64,000 nt of DNA from Fimbriosthenelais zetlandica (lineage: Eukaryota). Positions 3,895 to 11,103 of the stretch are shown one piece after another. The stretch's first letter is position 1, and each line of letters begins with the position of its first letter. The DNA is taken from positions 21,390,001-21,454,000 of the forward strand of contig OZ365112.1 in the NCBI GenBank assembly GCA_977030845.1, given 5' to 3'. A model generated the notes under the pieces. The model was not told the DNA's origin. It saw only the letters and a list, made by a program, of their open reading frames with translations, and made no database searches. The translations under genes were made by a program, and so were the position numbers.

Positions 3895-3913
3895 ATGGTG
3901 ACCACTAACCCAG
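3895..3913 (+). CDS. Alternative first coding exon A (MVTTNP-, no signal peptide)
   Basis: Strong Kozak context GCCATGG, 19 nt, donor CAG|GTAAGT, phase 1 matching downstream exons. Confidence 0.6.
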
Positions 3914-6900
3914 GTAAGTACCGTCTATCTCATTCTATTTATCTACACATGTATACAGATAAGATAGGATGCTCTAATCTGCATCTAAGTGTAATATGAC
4001 TGTTTCTGACAAATTAGAAAGTGTCAATAATAAAGGCTTCCTATAAGCTTGAAGATCTCTGTGTAACTGTATGTGATTATCCCAAAAAGTGGGTTGCTTC
4101 ACACAAGATGTGAATCATATAAAATATGTATATTCACCTATATAATGTTCAATTAGCAAATCAACGTACACCAAGGGCTGGTATAATTCGAAAAATATTA
4201 AAATATTTTTAGACTAAATGAAGGGAATACAATTTTCACATGGAATAATTTGAGGATATGCACACAAATATTTTTAGAAAATATCGAAGGTGATAATCTA
4301 TTTATTACCACAATCTATTCTCCCTTTACAACGCCCCTCACTTTGAAATGAGTCATCAAATGAATTTACACTATTAATGCTTTTTTTTAAAAATTGGATA
4401 ACATACCAGGTGTTCATTGCAATTTAGATTTTGCTACTTGTACTCGGAGTGTGCCACTGTTTTGGACAGGTAAATCGTGACATCATCGACTATAAATAGC
4501 AACCAGGAAAAACCCATTTCCCTCACACCTGATTGGTTCAACTTGACCTGGCTTGAAAGCTCCTAACAATAGGTCAGCCATGCATGGCTGGATCTGCCCC
4601 ACAAATATATGGACCATTCTATAAGACCATGTTCTATTCAACAGGCTTCAAGTGTGGGCTTAAAATAGCTTACATTTGTCCACATAAGCTTATCTTGTAA
4701 GCATGTGTGTACCTGCAGCTCTGCAGCTGGAGAGCTGGATGTTGAAGCATTAATGAGCATCACGAGTCTACGTGTATTAGGAAAAGCTCGTCAGTTACAC
4801 ATGCTGCTATAGACAGTGGTACATTGAGTCTGAGTCATATAGACGACTCGTGGATTGTCCATACACTCTCAGACCACATTCCCACATCATAGTCTACCTA
4901 TGTATGTCTATAGGTAGAGAGGAACACCACAATAACAAAGATGAAGTCATCCAGACCCACTGGATTCACCTGTTTAGGAGTATGGACAGTGATTAGCATA
5001 CTATTAACAGGTAAGGGGAGATACACATGGAGGGAGGTTGTCAGTGATGTGACACTGCTCACCTCGTGCTGCTTTATTTGGTGTAAAATGAACGTGTAAC
5101 AAACCGTGGAAATGACAATTTCACGGTGTCACATCCTGACCCCAATCAGTGTCTATGTATGTTACTGTAGTAGTATGGTTTCACCTGGCCATAGCGCTAT
5201 CACTCAGGGGGAGAACAACTGAACCATTCCCAGCTTAGATAATCCCTCAGGTACATAGTTAGAATGGTTGGAAGTTCAACTATTGATATGTATGGGATGT
5301 TAGGAAAGGGCGTGGCCGGTCAACTAATGGCTTATTGAACTGTAGTGATGGAAGGGGTTAGTCATCGGGGAGGAGTGAGTTGACAGTCAGCTGTGACAAC
5401 CCAGGTGATAACCATCAGGTGAGCGATGATAGAGGGAGATCTCTACATATCATATAGTCCATACACCACCCGGGGTACGACTGGGCGATGTCTTTATACA
5501 CAGAAGGTATAAAAGGTAGACAAACTGAAATCATGTGTTACCTCAGATGACCATTACTGATAAGAGCAAAAGATATCAAAATATATTAATATGACCACTA
5601 AAAGATATACCCATGCCCATGGCTAGATGTACAAAATCCTGTCTACGACGTATACTATTATAGTACTAGCTGCTGCTAAGCCTATTAAAGAAAAACTTTG
5701 GTTTAACAAAGCATTATAAATAAGTGTGAAGAGCTCTAGAGTGTACTTAACTTCTAATTCCACCTATTGTACAGTATATTTGGCTTTGTTGAGGGAATTC
5801 CAGAATTAATTTGACAATTCATTTCTAGTGAAGTGTATTTTCACAATCTTCAATCACAATCTGTCCCGTAAAAAGCAGTACAATTTTGTTTCTAATTTTT
5901 CAGAGATTCCTCATGTGAACGCCGGTGACAGTGAATCTCTTGGGGGTAAGTTAATCTACTTTCTTAAAGTTCATTTATTAAGGATTCAACTGAGATGTTT
6001 TATAACTTGTGAATAACACAAATTTTATGTTTATGATAACCGACACACTTCACTGAGTGCTCCAGAGAGTTTGCACTGTTTAATGAGTGAGTGAGGATCA
6101 ATAATGCTTAGATACAATTTCGATCTGTATATTTTCATTCGGAGCCTGATGATAATTTGGCCTGTGTGTCTTATCATGGCTGTCACGTGGTAATATTGAC
6201 ACTTGTCTGGGCCGCCTGATTTATGTAGAGCAGCTAGAGGTGGACCTGCCCTGTACAGCCACCTCTATTTACTTTATTCTGCTCATTCCAATATATTATA
6301 TACCTGGCCCGGCAGATGTTCTCACAGCTCCCACAGGCAGAGGGCAGGGTGGCAGTGTTATAGGCCCATAACTGATCAGCCTGTATATCATTGATCAGGT
6401 GCATCTATGCATAGTCATCCATCAAGTCTCCTATACATGGTGGTACATTGTACTTAAAGAGATCTCTATAAATATCTCCAGTTGTGGAACTTATTACCAT
6501 AAGGATGTATAATGAGTCATGCTTGATGCTGTTGCTGATTGGATAGTAAAGGATATAGATAAGCTGTGACCCAGGGCACTATATCTTATCTCCAGCACCA
6601 GATAGACTAAGAAGGTCCCATGCCGAATTGGTATTGAAATATTGTACTTAATTGAGAGCTTTGGATTTAGATGGGCTGATCCCTTTTGGAACATTCATTT
6701 TTAAGCGGTCATGGGAGGTAAGTTTTACCTATCTACCTATCAATAGCATAACTATATAGAAAGGCAAGATAAGGAAGAAATGAAATCAGTTTAGCATTCA
6801 AAGTGCGAATACTTAGGTGTATAATGTGGGGTCATAAATTACGGCAGGTATAATAGCAGGCATGCTTCCTCCTCGATGGTTATAGCACCAATCGCTTAAT

Positions 6901-9900: not shown

Positions 9901-11103
9901 TTCTGAAATTCTCTGTGCTTCTTAACTGGCAATGGTTTTGGATGTCAGTTTTAGGAGGGTGAGAATATAATTATACTTTCTCACAATTTTATTGGACTTT
10001 GATGATAATTGTAGGTAAGGGATCTGGGAGCGTTTTTGAGCGGACACAGAGCATGGATGATGTGGATGGGGCCGTCACACGACCTCTACAACGTGAGTAG
10101 ACTCAGACAAGCCTAGTAAATGAATACAACCCTGATTACAATAAAAAAATACTAACATTGATAGACAAAATATTGATGTATCATCGTATTTCGCGTTCTA
10201 GCTACTATTATGAAAAAAAGAAGTATGGGATCCAATATGGACATAATAGAGGACACCACAGGAGAATCCACCATCATAATCAGAAGTGAGTTTCCTTATG
10301 GTCATTCTTAAATGCATCAAATTGTATTGTTGCAATCGATAGAACTACAATCATACTTATATTTCATGGTGGATGCATTTAAATGATGCTGGATTTATAG
10401 AAGATACATGTACCTTATTGATTTAATTATTCAACATTGAACGTTTTTACAGGTACAAAGACTGTCGTACATGACAACAATCCAGCTTTAATACACTACA
10501 CACGTCACATTGACTCCAAGGGGAACACTCGCAAATTCAATGGTACGATATAATTTCACAAAATGTAACGTGCACTGATGTATATGCCATGAAAGTACAA
10601 TGTAATGATTTTGGCTCAAGCTTTGTTCATGATTTGGCTCGTTCTGTATTTTTTCTAGGCCTGCTCTCTGATAAGGGTCTGTGGGAGTTGGCCAGGATGA
10701 TTGGCGTAGAATGGCCGAGGTTGGCCACATACCTTAACGTTCCCAGCTCTGTGCAGGTACGTTATAATTTGTAACCATTATTCACAGATAATTCAAGGCT
10801 CAGCTGAAGAATCAAAGTTAAAACAAGGCAAATACTGAACCACACATGAAACTCTTTGAAAATGAAACCATGCATGTTTTCCTTCAGGCGCAGATCAAAA
10901 TGGACTATCCCAACAATACCCTACAACAAATATATTCAGTATTCAAAATATGGAGGGATACGACTGAAGGGTCAAAACAACAGGTGAAGGGCATCCTTTA
11001 TAATGCCCTGTGTAAGTGTGAGAGGTCGGATCTGGGTGAAGACATTCTCCGTGAGGAAACACAAGGCAGTGAGGAAAGAGTTGGCTACCATTCCATCATC
11101 TGA
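3895..11103 (+). CDS. Multi-exon gene encoding a single-pass membrane protein with short ectodomain, SAM-like domain and C-terminal death domain (413 aa from the 4941 start; 396 aa from the 3895 start)
   Basis: Exons 4941-5010 (or 3895-3913), 5904-5945, 7930-8046, 8856-9014, 9121-9318, 9436-9525, 10015-10092, 10202-10285, 10453-10542, 10659-10756, 10888-11103 all have GT-AG boundaries and join into one stop-free frame (1242 nt from 4941). Confidence 0.85.
4941..5010 (+). CDS. Alternative first coding exon B encoding a signal-peptide-like segment MKSSRPTGFTCLGVWTVISILLT
   Basis: Basic N-terminus plus hydrophobic core, 70 nt, donor CAG|GTAAGG, phase 1. Confidence 0.65.
5904..5945 (+). CDS. Exon (E)IPHVNAGDSESLG with probable signal-peptidase site VNA|GD and most of the tiny ectodomain
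   Basis: Acceptor TTTTTCAG|, donor G|GTAAGT, 42 nt, phase 1-1. Confidence 0.7.
7077..7089. promoter_or_regulatory. Second RFX X-box-like palindrome (GTTGCTTAGCAAC) in an intron of the death-domain gene
   Basis: GTTGC-N3-GCAAC inverted half-sites. Confidence 0.5.
7930..8046 (+). CDS. Transmembrane exon (G)TIGIVIAVSLFTSLITTASTLGILYCIHKSRKKSSRLK
   Basis: Long hydrophobic stretch, juxtamembrane Cys, basic stop-transfer cluster; acceptor TTTAAACAG|, donor C|GTGAGT; 117 nt, phase 1-1. Confidence 0.85.
8856..9014 (+). CDS. Cytoplasmic Ser-rich linker exon
   Basis: Acceptor TTTGTTTCAG|, donor A|GTAAGT, 159 nt, open frame, phase 1-1. Confidence 0.8.
9121..9318 (+). CDS. Exon encoding a SAM-like domain: DFIAKWCTGNNLTEKTAEVLRDHGFTYKEAVEAMDVNDVASLGLSRAQECVLRQVLNLRQ
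   Basis: W..(N)L....L..HGF.....L/M...D(L/V)..LGL..G/A....L spacing typical of SAM domains; 198 nt, acceptor CCCTTCACAG|, donor A|GTGAGT. Confidence 0.7.
9436..9525 (+). CDS. Linker exon SSYISRNPNRANSDEALPLTSINSHNSHNS
   Basis: Acceptor TTTTTCCAG|, donor A|GTAAGT, 90 nt, phase 1-1. Confidence 0.8.
9557..9576. repeat. (AT)10 microsatellite, intronic
   Basis: Direct reading of the sequence. Confidence 0.9.
10015..10092 (+). CDS. Linker exon SKGSGSVFERTQSMDDVDGAVTRPLQ
   Basis: Acceptor TTGTAG|, donor C|GTGAGT, 78 nt, phase 1-1. Confidence 0.7.
10202..10285 (+). CDS. Linker exon PTIMKKRSMGSNMDIIEDTTGESTIIIR
   Basis: Acceptor TTTCGCGTTCTAG|, donor A|GTGAGT, 84 nt, phase 1-1. Confidence 0.7.
10453..10542 (+). 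CDS. Linker exon STKTVVHDNNPALIHYTRHIDSKGNTRKFN
   Basis: Acceptor TTTTTACAG|, donor G|GTACGA, 90 nt, phase 1-1. Confidence 0.7.
10659..10756 (+). CDS. Death domain, N-terminal half: GLLSDKGLWELARMIGVEWPRLATYLNVPSSVQ
   Basis: L..LA..IG..W..LA..L.V death-fold pattern; acceptor TTTTTTCTAG|, donor CAG|GTACGT; phase 1-0. Confidence 0.88.
10888..11103 (+). CDS. Death domain, C-terminal half, plus tail ending EERVGYHSII*
   Basis: I..DYP......I...F..W..........L..AL....R.DL pattern; acceptor TTCCTTCAG|, stop TGA 11101-11103. Confidence 0.88.
   Translation, partial: AQIKMDYPNNTLQQIYSVFKIWRDTTEGSKQQVKGILYNALCKCERSDLGEDILREETQGSEERVGYHSII

Follow-up and report, generated by a model that had tools for sequence, protein, structure and literature searches.

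Death-domain signalling usually begins at a ligand-binding receptor (TNFR, p75NTR, UNC5) or at a soluble adaptor. The stretch of Fimbriosthenelais zetlandica DNA analyzed here (64,000 nucleotides, positions 21,390,001 to 21,454,000 of contig OZ365112.1 in assembly GCA_977030845.1; hereafter the window, with positions counted from its first letter) contains a spliced gene whose predicted product places a SAM-like module and a death domain behind a membrane anchor with almost no ectodomain, and no published description of a TM-SAM-death-domain combination was found in the literature. The locus raises the question of whether such a gene is real, whether its product belongs to a known receptor family and how a death-domain protein of this layout would be engaged.

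Gene structure and conservation among annelids

The coding sequence is assembled from eleven exons on the forward strand (4941-11103), each preceded by AG and followed by GT, which join into a 413-aa ORF (a 1242-nt frame) that the last exon closes with TGA. An initial annotation of this DNA had proposed eleven GT-AG exons joined into a 413-aa ORF, which hold up both on exon joining and on the cross-species collinearity over all ten junctions described below, and the exons that it assigned to SAM (9121-9318) and to the death domain (10659-11103) are exactly exons 5 and 10-11 of the present model. Its gene start at 3895, however, has to be given up: the first codon of the ORF is the ATG at 4941, with in-frame stops preceding it, and the ATG at 3895 (3895-3913, forward strand, with a GT donor 19 nt later) lies outside the ORF and may be a 5' non-coding exon or no feature at all. 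Nine of the ten introns are in phase 1 and the SAM module occupies one symmetric exon, a pattern not remarked on in the initial annotation that we count as support for a putative origin by shuffling.

Residues 8-413 of the spliced product align with P0003, a 392-aa protein from another species (41% identity, E 4e-88), in an alignment that spans all ten junctions and confines its gaps to variable linkers; the contig encoding P0003 (1796 nt) is intron-free, and a second intron-free contig also matches the spliced product. This collinearity across species supports the predicted splice junctions. Sequences from two datasets (L003 and L005) are collinear with the gene model from the SAM module through the stop codon at 49% identity, and the seven nucleotide differences between them all fall at third codon positions (7/7) with zero amino-acid changes; being purely synonymous, these differences count as a sign of selection on the family. 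The family also includes Capitella teleta CAPTEDRAFT_211208 (UniProt R7T9L3; 31% identity over 366 aligned positions), which has the TM segment, the SAM-like block and the death domain, and a fragment from Lamellibrachia satsuma is likewise assigned to it. The Capitella gene carries its death domain on one exon and has an extra intron that splits SAM; the public model has no signal peptide, being perhaps incomplete or a signal-anchor form, and mis-reads the C-terminus, the genomic exon ending in S-L-I-stop.

At least four species share the layout of signal peptide, 6-8-residue ectodomain, TM helix, SAM fold, linker and death domain, which bears out the domain order first proposed for this locus. 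The accompanying suggestion of an invertebrate module is to be narrowed, all named sources being annelid. Could the locus nevertheless be non-functional, whether as an ORF that arose by chance, a mis-joined model or a pseudogene? The gene model lacks same-species transcript support; against this stand the end-to-end ortholog collinearity over every junction at the E value given above, an intact reading frame, two sampled alleles of one ortholog that differ only synonymously, and domains and a tail conserved across annelid species, which together leave such a reading very unlikely and close to negligible. The gene is real, annelid and kept by selection, and its combination of membrane anchor, SAM, death domain and docking tail is conserved across several annelids.

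Membrane segment, SAM module, death domain and tail

Hydropathy identifies two hydrophobic segments in the product, at aa 7-28 and aa 35-65. Exon 1 (4941-5010, forward strand, as are all exons) supplies the start codon and, over aa 1-23, the n- and h-regions of a predicted signal peptide, and aligns with the N-terminus of P0003. Exon 2 (5904-5945) encodes the signal c-region, with a V-x-A motif (V-N-A) ahead of the predicted cleavage site, and the 8-residue stretch GDSESLGG (aa 31-38) that follows it; the counterpart in P0003 is V-E-A followed by a 6-residue ectodomain. Exon 3 (7930-8046) contains the TM helix (aa 39-65, 7932-8012), recognized by hydropathy and by conservation in three species, and after it a juxtamembrane Cys and a basic cluster with an R-L-K-R end. 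Cleavage of the signal peptide would follow from the -3/-1 rule, and the product is predicted to be a type I single-pass protein with about eight extracellular residues and a juxtamembrane Cys that may be palmitoylated. A Ser/Thr stripe along the TM helix, absent from the initial annotation, is conserved in three species.

The ectodomain is truly tiny and not encoded elsewhere in the orthologous transcript, because an in-frame stop precedes the start of the P0003 ORF by 17 codons and lies upstream of the signal peptide. A search of introns 1-2 for a Cys-rich ORF returned none, and with these two results the initial description of a protein with almost no ectodomain stands and the alternative of a separately encoded ectodomain, as judged from the orthologous transcript, falls away.

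Beyond a Ser-rich, little conserved cytoplasmic linker without a Pfam match (exon 4, 8856-9014), exon 5 (9121-9318, with both flanking introns in phase 1) encodes the complete SAM-fold module (aa 131-191, 9123-9305). At the level of sequence this module lies under the Pfam threshold: SAM_2 scores 12.0 bits on the window exon (E 0.24, cut-off 20.5), P0003 and P0017 have no SAM match in Pfam at E<=1, and the best PDB match of the SAM profile is the EphB2 SAM at E 0.32. The SAM_2 and EphB2 scores are still faint sequence signals in favour of SAM, as are the 100 nearest Atlas clusters, 47 of which are SAM. An AlphaFold (AF2) model of the segment, built on an alignment of six sequences only (A5), has a pLDDT of 89.4 and a pTM of 0.71, with five helices at 2-9, 14-22, 28-32, 36-42 and 46-62. 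SAM domains make up about 45 of its best 50 Foldseek matches in the PDB and 29 of the best 30 in Swiss-Prot (probability 0.9-0.99, TM 0.6-0.79), with E-values of 0.2-1 because the SAM domain is small, and they also head the VIA-align results (Z up to 9.4, rmsd 2.2, 64/65 residues). The SAM-like module of the initial annotation is thus upheld as a modelled fold, if not as a sequence match, and residues 131-191 probably form a divergent SAM fold, in which the last of five helices is long and the whole measures some 65 residues. In structure the model comes nearest to Eph-type SAMs, a group that mostly pairs heterotypically with other SAMs instead of polymerizing. Lower in the structure match lists appear other domains of SAM-like fold, namely the RAD51 N-terminal, NusA and RNA polymerase alpha C-terminal domains.

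The region between the two folded domains comprises a low-complexity linker (exon 6, 9436-9525), a linker with the conserved motif Q-S-M-D-D-V-D-G (exon 7, 10015-10092; motif at aa 237-244, 10047-10070), a conserved K-K-R-S basic-Ser motif with an acidic, hydrophobic stretch after it (exon 8, 10202-10285) and a linker leading to the death domain (exon 9, 10453-10542). The exon 7 motif has the form D-x-x-D-G, which three of four orthologs retain and Capitella lacks, and which might conceivably serve as a caspase site. Across the four orthologs aligned, the linkers share no conserved Tyr motif.

The N-terminal part of the death domain lies on exon 10 (10659-10756; domain start at ~10676, aa 316), which aligns with the residues of P0003 that match Pfam Death positions 3-82, and its C-terminal part lies on exon 11 (10888-11103; to ~11049), followed by an acidic tail, H-S-I-I (11089-11100) and the TGA stop. 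Pfam Death (PF00531) matches exon 11 alone at 23.5 bits (cut-off 22.6) and is found in 11 of 11 family members (best E 5.6e-12; 39.4 bits in P0001), and the family profile (A6) matches the PDB death domains of RIPK1 (1.8e-9), PIDD (3.2e-9), FADD (3.3e-9), ankyrin (2e-7) and CRADD (3e-5) over profile positions ~3-93. THOC1 is likewise among the PDB matches of this profile. The Pfam score above the cut-off and the profile matches near 1e-9 confirm the C-terminal death domain that was originally proposed; on this sequence evidence the assignment is firm, and the domain is probably of the adaptor type, nearest to those of RIPK1, PIDD and FADD.

All close members of the family end, directly at the stop codon, in [S/T]-[I/L/M]-[I/V] (S-I-I, S-I-V, T-I-I, S-L-I, S-L-V or S-M-V), a conserved C-terminus that fits the class I PDZ ligand [S/T]-x-hydrophobic-COOH and may bind PDZ domains. 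The initial annotation had overlooked this PDZ-ligand-type terminus. That the protein is built in the way described here is, in our assessment, highly probable.

Comparison with known membrane and SAM proteins

In gross layout the protein resembles NRADD/NRH2 and the portion of p75NTR (TNFRSF16) that lies inside the cell: these, too, are type I proteins whose ligand-binding ectodomain is short or missing and which carry a juxtamembrane Cys and a cytoplasmic death domain, and p75NTR also ends in a PDZ-type tail. NRADD/NRH2 and p75NTR are thought to act with partner receptors. In the annelid protein, however, TNFR_16_TM and TNFR repeat signatures are missing, the death domain belongs to the RIPK1/PIDD/FADD type and not to the p75 type, and a SAM domain, which NRADD and p75NTR lack, separates the death domain from the membrane; the likeness to NRADD is limited to the layout of short ectodomain, TM segment and death domain.

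Other systems resemble single parts of the protein. SARM1 (ARM-SAM-SAM-TIR) offers an analogy, in that SAM adjoins a cooperatively assembling signalling domain and SAM oligomers determine how concentrated the effector domain becomes locally, but it has tandem SAMs in an octameric ring, a catalytic TIR and no membrane span, whereas the annelid protein joins a single SAM to a death domain and is anchored by a TM helix. Eph receptors, which are also membrane proteins, and Sans/ANKS4B share with it SAM and a C-terminal PDZ-ligand-type tail and provide the best structural SAM matches, at sequence identities of 14-22%; in these proteins the tail comes right after SAM, whereas in the annelid protein about 220 residues, death domain included, lie between the two, and the kinase and ephrin-binding ectodomain of Eph receptors are absent. 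LAT, PAG, NTAL and LIME likewise keep their ectodomain minimal, cross the membrane with one TM helix, bear a potentially palmitoylated juxtamembrane Cys and lack any enzymatic domain, but their disordered tails bear multiple phosphotyrosine motifs, while the annelid tail is devoid of a conserved Tyr motif and carries folded SAM and death domains.

Candidate mode of action and alternatives

We hypothesize that the protein is a membrane-tethered death-domain adaptor without a ligand-binding part of its own. Input would arrive sideways, either from a partner receptor through the conserved Ser/Thr face of the TM helix or from a PDZ scaffold gripping the tail; SAM would then gather copies of the protein, or bind another SAM protein, and raise the local concentration of death domains, which would recruit a cytosolic death-domain protein of the FADD, RIPK1, PIDD or CRADD type. 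On balance we consider this explanation as a whole, an annelid membrane SAM-death-domain adaptor, to be probable. Its component of SAM-driven death-domain clustering is plausible but somewhat less likely than not, the Eph-type character of the nearest SAM matches telling against polymerization; the clustering by SAM polymers suggested in the initial annotation, and the immune, apoptotic or neuronal role attached to it there, are likewise tentative. SAM self-association, the binding partners and the pathway are best read as predictions from the domain content. By analogy with SARM1, whose logic would here have been moved to the death fold, the protein could go further and act as an annelid-specific receptor-less hub, in which SAM, polymerized head to tail at the membrane, nucleates a helical death-domain signalosome and the tail couples to a PDZ-bearing death-fold adaptor; this elaboration is distinctly unlikely.

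Among the alternatives, descent from the p75NTR/NRADD lineage, with loss of the TNFR repeats and gain of a SAM exon, would account for the NRADD-like layout and the p75NTR-like tail, and the nearest Atlas clusters of P0003 by features are NRADD and TNFRSF16, with scores of just 0.71-0.74 (lead level). Neither PF18422 (TNFR_16_TM) nor TNFR_c6 is matched in P0003 and P0017 at E<=1, though, and the window TM exon has no Pfam match at E<=10. Several p75NTR death-domain entries exist in the PDB, so the absence of any p75NTR chain from the matches of the family death-domain profile at E<=10, against values of ~1e-9 for RIPK1, PIDD and FADD, counts against this origin, which we regard as quite improbable; a p75/NRADD fragment as such is rejected. 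An UNC5 fragment, or a ZU5-UPA-death-domain supramodule, is rejected as well, given that P0003 and P0017 have no ZU5 or UPA match and that no UNC5 chain occurs in the profile matches at E<=10. The possibility raised in the initial annotation as a refutation, a divergent fragment of p75/NRADD or UNC5, is accordingly set aside.

The same architecture could instead belong to a scaffold with no part in death or immune signalling: an Eph-like heterotypic SAM and a PDZ anchor would make a structural adaptor at a junction, synapse or cilium, with a generic death domain like that of the ankyrins. The strong conservation of the tail speaks for this reading, as do the best structural matches, which are Eph receptor SAMs and the SAM-plus-PDZ-ligand proteins Sans and ANKS4B bound to harmonin, and the presence of ankyrin death domains among the profile matches; these are nevertheless outscored by the death domains of RIPK1, PIDD and FADD, and we hold a pure scaffold to be rather unlikely. 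The absence of an enzymatic or effector domain would also suit a membrane-tethered decoy or brake that sequesters FADD- or RIPK-type adaptors and damps signalling, perhaps until a caspase cut at the D-x-x-D-G between SAM and death domain frees the latter. This conjecture draws on the retention of that motif in most orthologs, but its loss in Capitella speaks against it, and we judge it improbable.

In the preferred reading, a membrane adaptor, the annelid protein hints at a different control over the threshold at which a death-domain complex assembles: a membrane protein devoid of an ectodomain, with SAM ahead of an adaptor-type death domain and a PDZ-type tail, could reach that threshold through lateral recruitment and SAM-mediated clustering. 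Public annotation misses the SAM domain of the family; indeed, the Capitella ortholog is an uncharacterized "Death domain-containing protein" annotated with Death only, which makes the architecture invisible to domain-based surveys. Little is known of the pathways that serve extrinsic cell death and immunity in lophotrochozoans (PMC11463336), and this gene, judged from its sequence, is a concrete candidate component of them.

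Gene structure and annelid orthologs

Eleven exons on the forward strand join into a 1242-nt reading frame encoding 413 aa, and the sequence thereby confirms the spliced gene described in the initial annotation, whose GDSESLGG ectodomain, SAM exon (9121–9318) and death-domain exons (10659–11103) all coincide with those of our product. Placed by their flanking sequence within the sequence of 3500–11500, the exons occupy 4941–5010 (exon 1), 5904–5945 (exon 2), 7930–8046 (exon 3), 8856–9014 (exon 4), 9121–9318 (exon 5, SAM), 9436–9525 (exon 6), 10015–10092 (exon 7), 10202–10285 (exon 8), 10453–10542 (exon 9), 10659–10756 (exon 10) and 10888–11103 (exon 11), the last two encoding the death domain; every exon is preceded by AG, the first ten are followed by GT, and exon 11 ends in TGA. 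The left end was earlier put at 3895, which lies outside this frame (the ATG there is followed by a GT donor 19 nt on); the 413-aa frame opens at the ATG at 4941, with in-frame stops upstream.

That this is a gene is settled by homology. Searches for sequencing runs, with exons 4–5 and with the last exon and its 3′ flank as queries, yielded none of this species, and the junctions are covered by a cross-species alignment, not by same-species reads. A 392-aa ortholog encoded without introns (P0003) aligns with residues 8–413 of the spliced product (41% identity, E 4e-88); the alignment covers every one of the ten junctions, and its gaps are confined to variable linkers. The ortholog is a single uninterrupted ORF on a 1796-nt JGI contig, and an in-frame stop lies 17 codons 5′ of its start codon. 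An exhaustive search of representative proteins with the last exon (71 aa) as query returned 18 relatives, P0003 among them; our relatives derive from this search and from one with the SAM alignment, and word-indexed protein searches with P0003, whole or as its death-domain region, returned only the query itself. One further species is represented in two datasets, by contigs L003 (Logan) and L005 (JGI). In both, an intron-free stretch runs from the SAM-like block through the linker and death domain to the stop, and 5′ of the SAM block lies intron-like sequence ending in a splice acceptor positioned as at exon 5 in the window. The simplest reading is that these contigs are partly processed transcripts. 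Their sequences differ at seven nucleotides, each in a third codon position, and the encoded residues are identical across 292 codons. The third full-length relative is CAPTEDRAFT_211208 (R7T9L3) from Capitella teleta, annotated solely as a death-domain protein, and a fragment from Lamellibrachia satsuma is the fourth named source. All named sources are annelids, and the family has so far been seen in annelids only.

The closest non-annelid match is an uncharacterized 770-aa protein of Patiria miniata (XP_038062333.1) that has four death domains in tandem (Pfam Death, 156 bits over four stretches). A tblastx comparison between the Capitella contig and the window matched the gene's own exons only, and the cullin neighbor in Capitella is absent from the window. 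Around the gene, ARAGORN's sole tRNA call across the window is a tRNA-Cys (GCA) on the reverse strand at 3279–3351, ~1.6 kb upstream of the start codon; the program makes no call at 50053–50377, where a pair of tRNA-Ser-like RNAs had been proposed. A 235-aa open stretch at 37518–38222 (forward strand) encodes a complete homeodomain (Pfam Homeodomain, 85.7 bits, E 1.9e-24) and is probably the homeobox exon of a neighboring developmental gene. Between 28000 and 32000 GC content is raised (0.44–0.46) and GC skew is strongly negative (to −0.15); this region includes a 294-aa ATG ORF at 30237–31121 (forward strand) with no Pfam match.

Membrane segment, SAM module and death domain

Hydropathy reveals two segments. 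The first (aa 7–28) is followed by V-N-A (V-E-A in P0003), which fits the −3/−1 rule for signal-peptidase cleavage, and the predicted cut would leave 8 extracellular residues (6 in P0003). Next to the second (aa 35–65), on its C-terminal side, lie a Cys and a basic cluster, which by the positive-inside rule would place the remainder of the protein in the cytoplasm and make the predicted topology type I-like. The initial annotation had allowed that an ectodomain might be encoded elsewhere; the short ectodomain is not the artefact of a missed exon, because the orthologous ORF is 5′-complete and the open stretches of introns 1–2 and of the upstream sequence hold nothing Cys-rich or domain-like. 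Ser and Thr positions of the TM helix, previously unlisted, are kept in three species, which suggests helix–helix contacts within the membrane.

By sequence, the SAM assignment of exon 5 is weak: the exon matches Pfam SAM_2 at E 0.24, the orthologs have no SAM match in Pfam, a four-sequence profile finds the EphB2 SAM domain in the PDB at E 0.32, and 47 of the 100 nearest Atlas clusters (protein clusters ranked by feature nearness, with lead-level scores) are SAM. The best PDB match of this profile, Legionella DotG, was rejected as an artefact: its score is summed over short repeats, each similar to a single SAM motif. A single-sequence AF2 model of the exon (pLDDT 71), for which Foldseek gave no significant match, was replaced by a model from a six-sequence alignment that includes two exon-sized fragments recovered by the alignment. 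This AlphaFold model, which carries out a check that the initial annotation had proposed for 9121–9318, has five helices at pLDDT 89.4. When it is compared by Foldseek with the PDB and with Swiss-Prot models, nearly every match is a SAM domain (from Eph receptors, ASK3/MAP3K15, p73/p63, Sans, Caskin and SAMD3/5), at probability 0.9–0.99 and TM 0.6–0.79; the E-values of ~0.3 reflect the small size of the domain. In VIA-align, Z reaches 9.4 over 64 of 65 residues, and a few domains of SAM-like fold (RAD51 N-terminal, NusA) appear lower in the Foldseek lists. The modeled structure makes it highly probable that the exon 5 segment adopts a SAM fold.

The death domain is recognized by Pfam from the last exon alone (23.5 bits, cut-off 22.6) and in all 11 aligned family members. 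Against the PDB, the family profile matches the death domains of RIPK1, PIDD and FADD at ~1e-9, followed by those of ankyrin, CRADD and THOC1.

C-terminal tail, linker motifs and intron phases

All close family members carry [S/T]-[I/L/M]-[I/V] immediately 5′ of the stop, a feature missing from the initial annotation; a C-terminus of this kind has the form of a class I PDZ ligand. The sole apparent exception, a public gene call (P0005, L007 565–900), ran through a TGA: the DNA has a stop after T-I-I, and the six extra residues are a gene-caller artefact. Two linker motifs are conserved, a K-K-R-S block and Q-S-M-D-D-V-D-G (10047–10070, aa 237–244), the latter kept in three of the four orthologs and absent in Capitella. 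Its D-x-x-D-G form is that of a caspase-3/7-type site, and a cut there would part the membrane-bound SAM portion from the death domain.

Nine of the ten introns (within 5011–10887) are in phase 1, so exons 2–9 are all symmetric, and loss of any one of them by skipping would preserve the frame; the SAM domain occupies one single 1-1 exon. Symmetric phase-1 exons are the classical signature of exon shuffling, and death-fold domains have been shuffled freely in invertebrate genomes. Intron positions are only partly conserved with respect to Capitella, where the death domain lies on one exon and an extra intron splits the SAM domain.

Proposed mechanism and relation to known adaptors

The encoded membrane protein is conserved, has a predicted type I-like topology and a near-absent ectodomain, and combines a predicted SAM fold with a death domain of adaptor type and a C-terminus of PDZ-ligand form. 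We hypothesize that such a protein would be unable to bind ligand itself and would therefore have to be driven laterally, either from a PDZ scaffold or, via its TM helix, from a partner receptor. Self-association of the SAM domain might then raise the local concentration of death domains, or the SAM domain might bridge to another SAM protein, and the death domain would recruit a FADD-, RIPK1-, PIDD- or CRADD-type partner. The interpretation in the initial annotation is partly supported; its proposal of SAM polymerization is one version of this lateral drive, and we regard it as a tentative one, rather more likely wrong than right.

The main rival is a scaffold without a role in death signaling, whose SAM domain would be heterotypic and Eph-like; Eph receptors, together with Sans and ANKS4B, are the nearest known proteins in pairing a SAM domain with a tail. 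A decoy role is less likely, as is descent from p75/NRADD. NRADD and p75NTR are nearest in layout, but their defining sequence features were looked for and not found here, and no p75NTR or UNC5 chain occurs among the PDB matches of the family profile at E ≤ 10. Membership of the p75/NRADD and UNC5 families, which the initial annotation had raised against its own reading, was rejected on such features.

SARM1 is nearest in logic and the LAT/PAG adaptors in their minimal ectodomain, but the aligned orthologs of the present family show no conserved Tyr motifs. Our literature search found no paper on a TM–SAM–death-domain protein, an absence that is not proof, and none naming the Capitella or Lamellibrachia accessions of the family; no large cluster with both SAM and Death occurs among the 100 nearest named Atlas clusters (at lead level). 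A study of domain shuffling in amphioxus lists TIR-SAM and no SAM–death combination (PMC2575513). Death-domain membrane adaptors as such are already known; what is new in this annelid family is the SAM module, which earlier annotation lacks, together with the PDZ-type tail.
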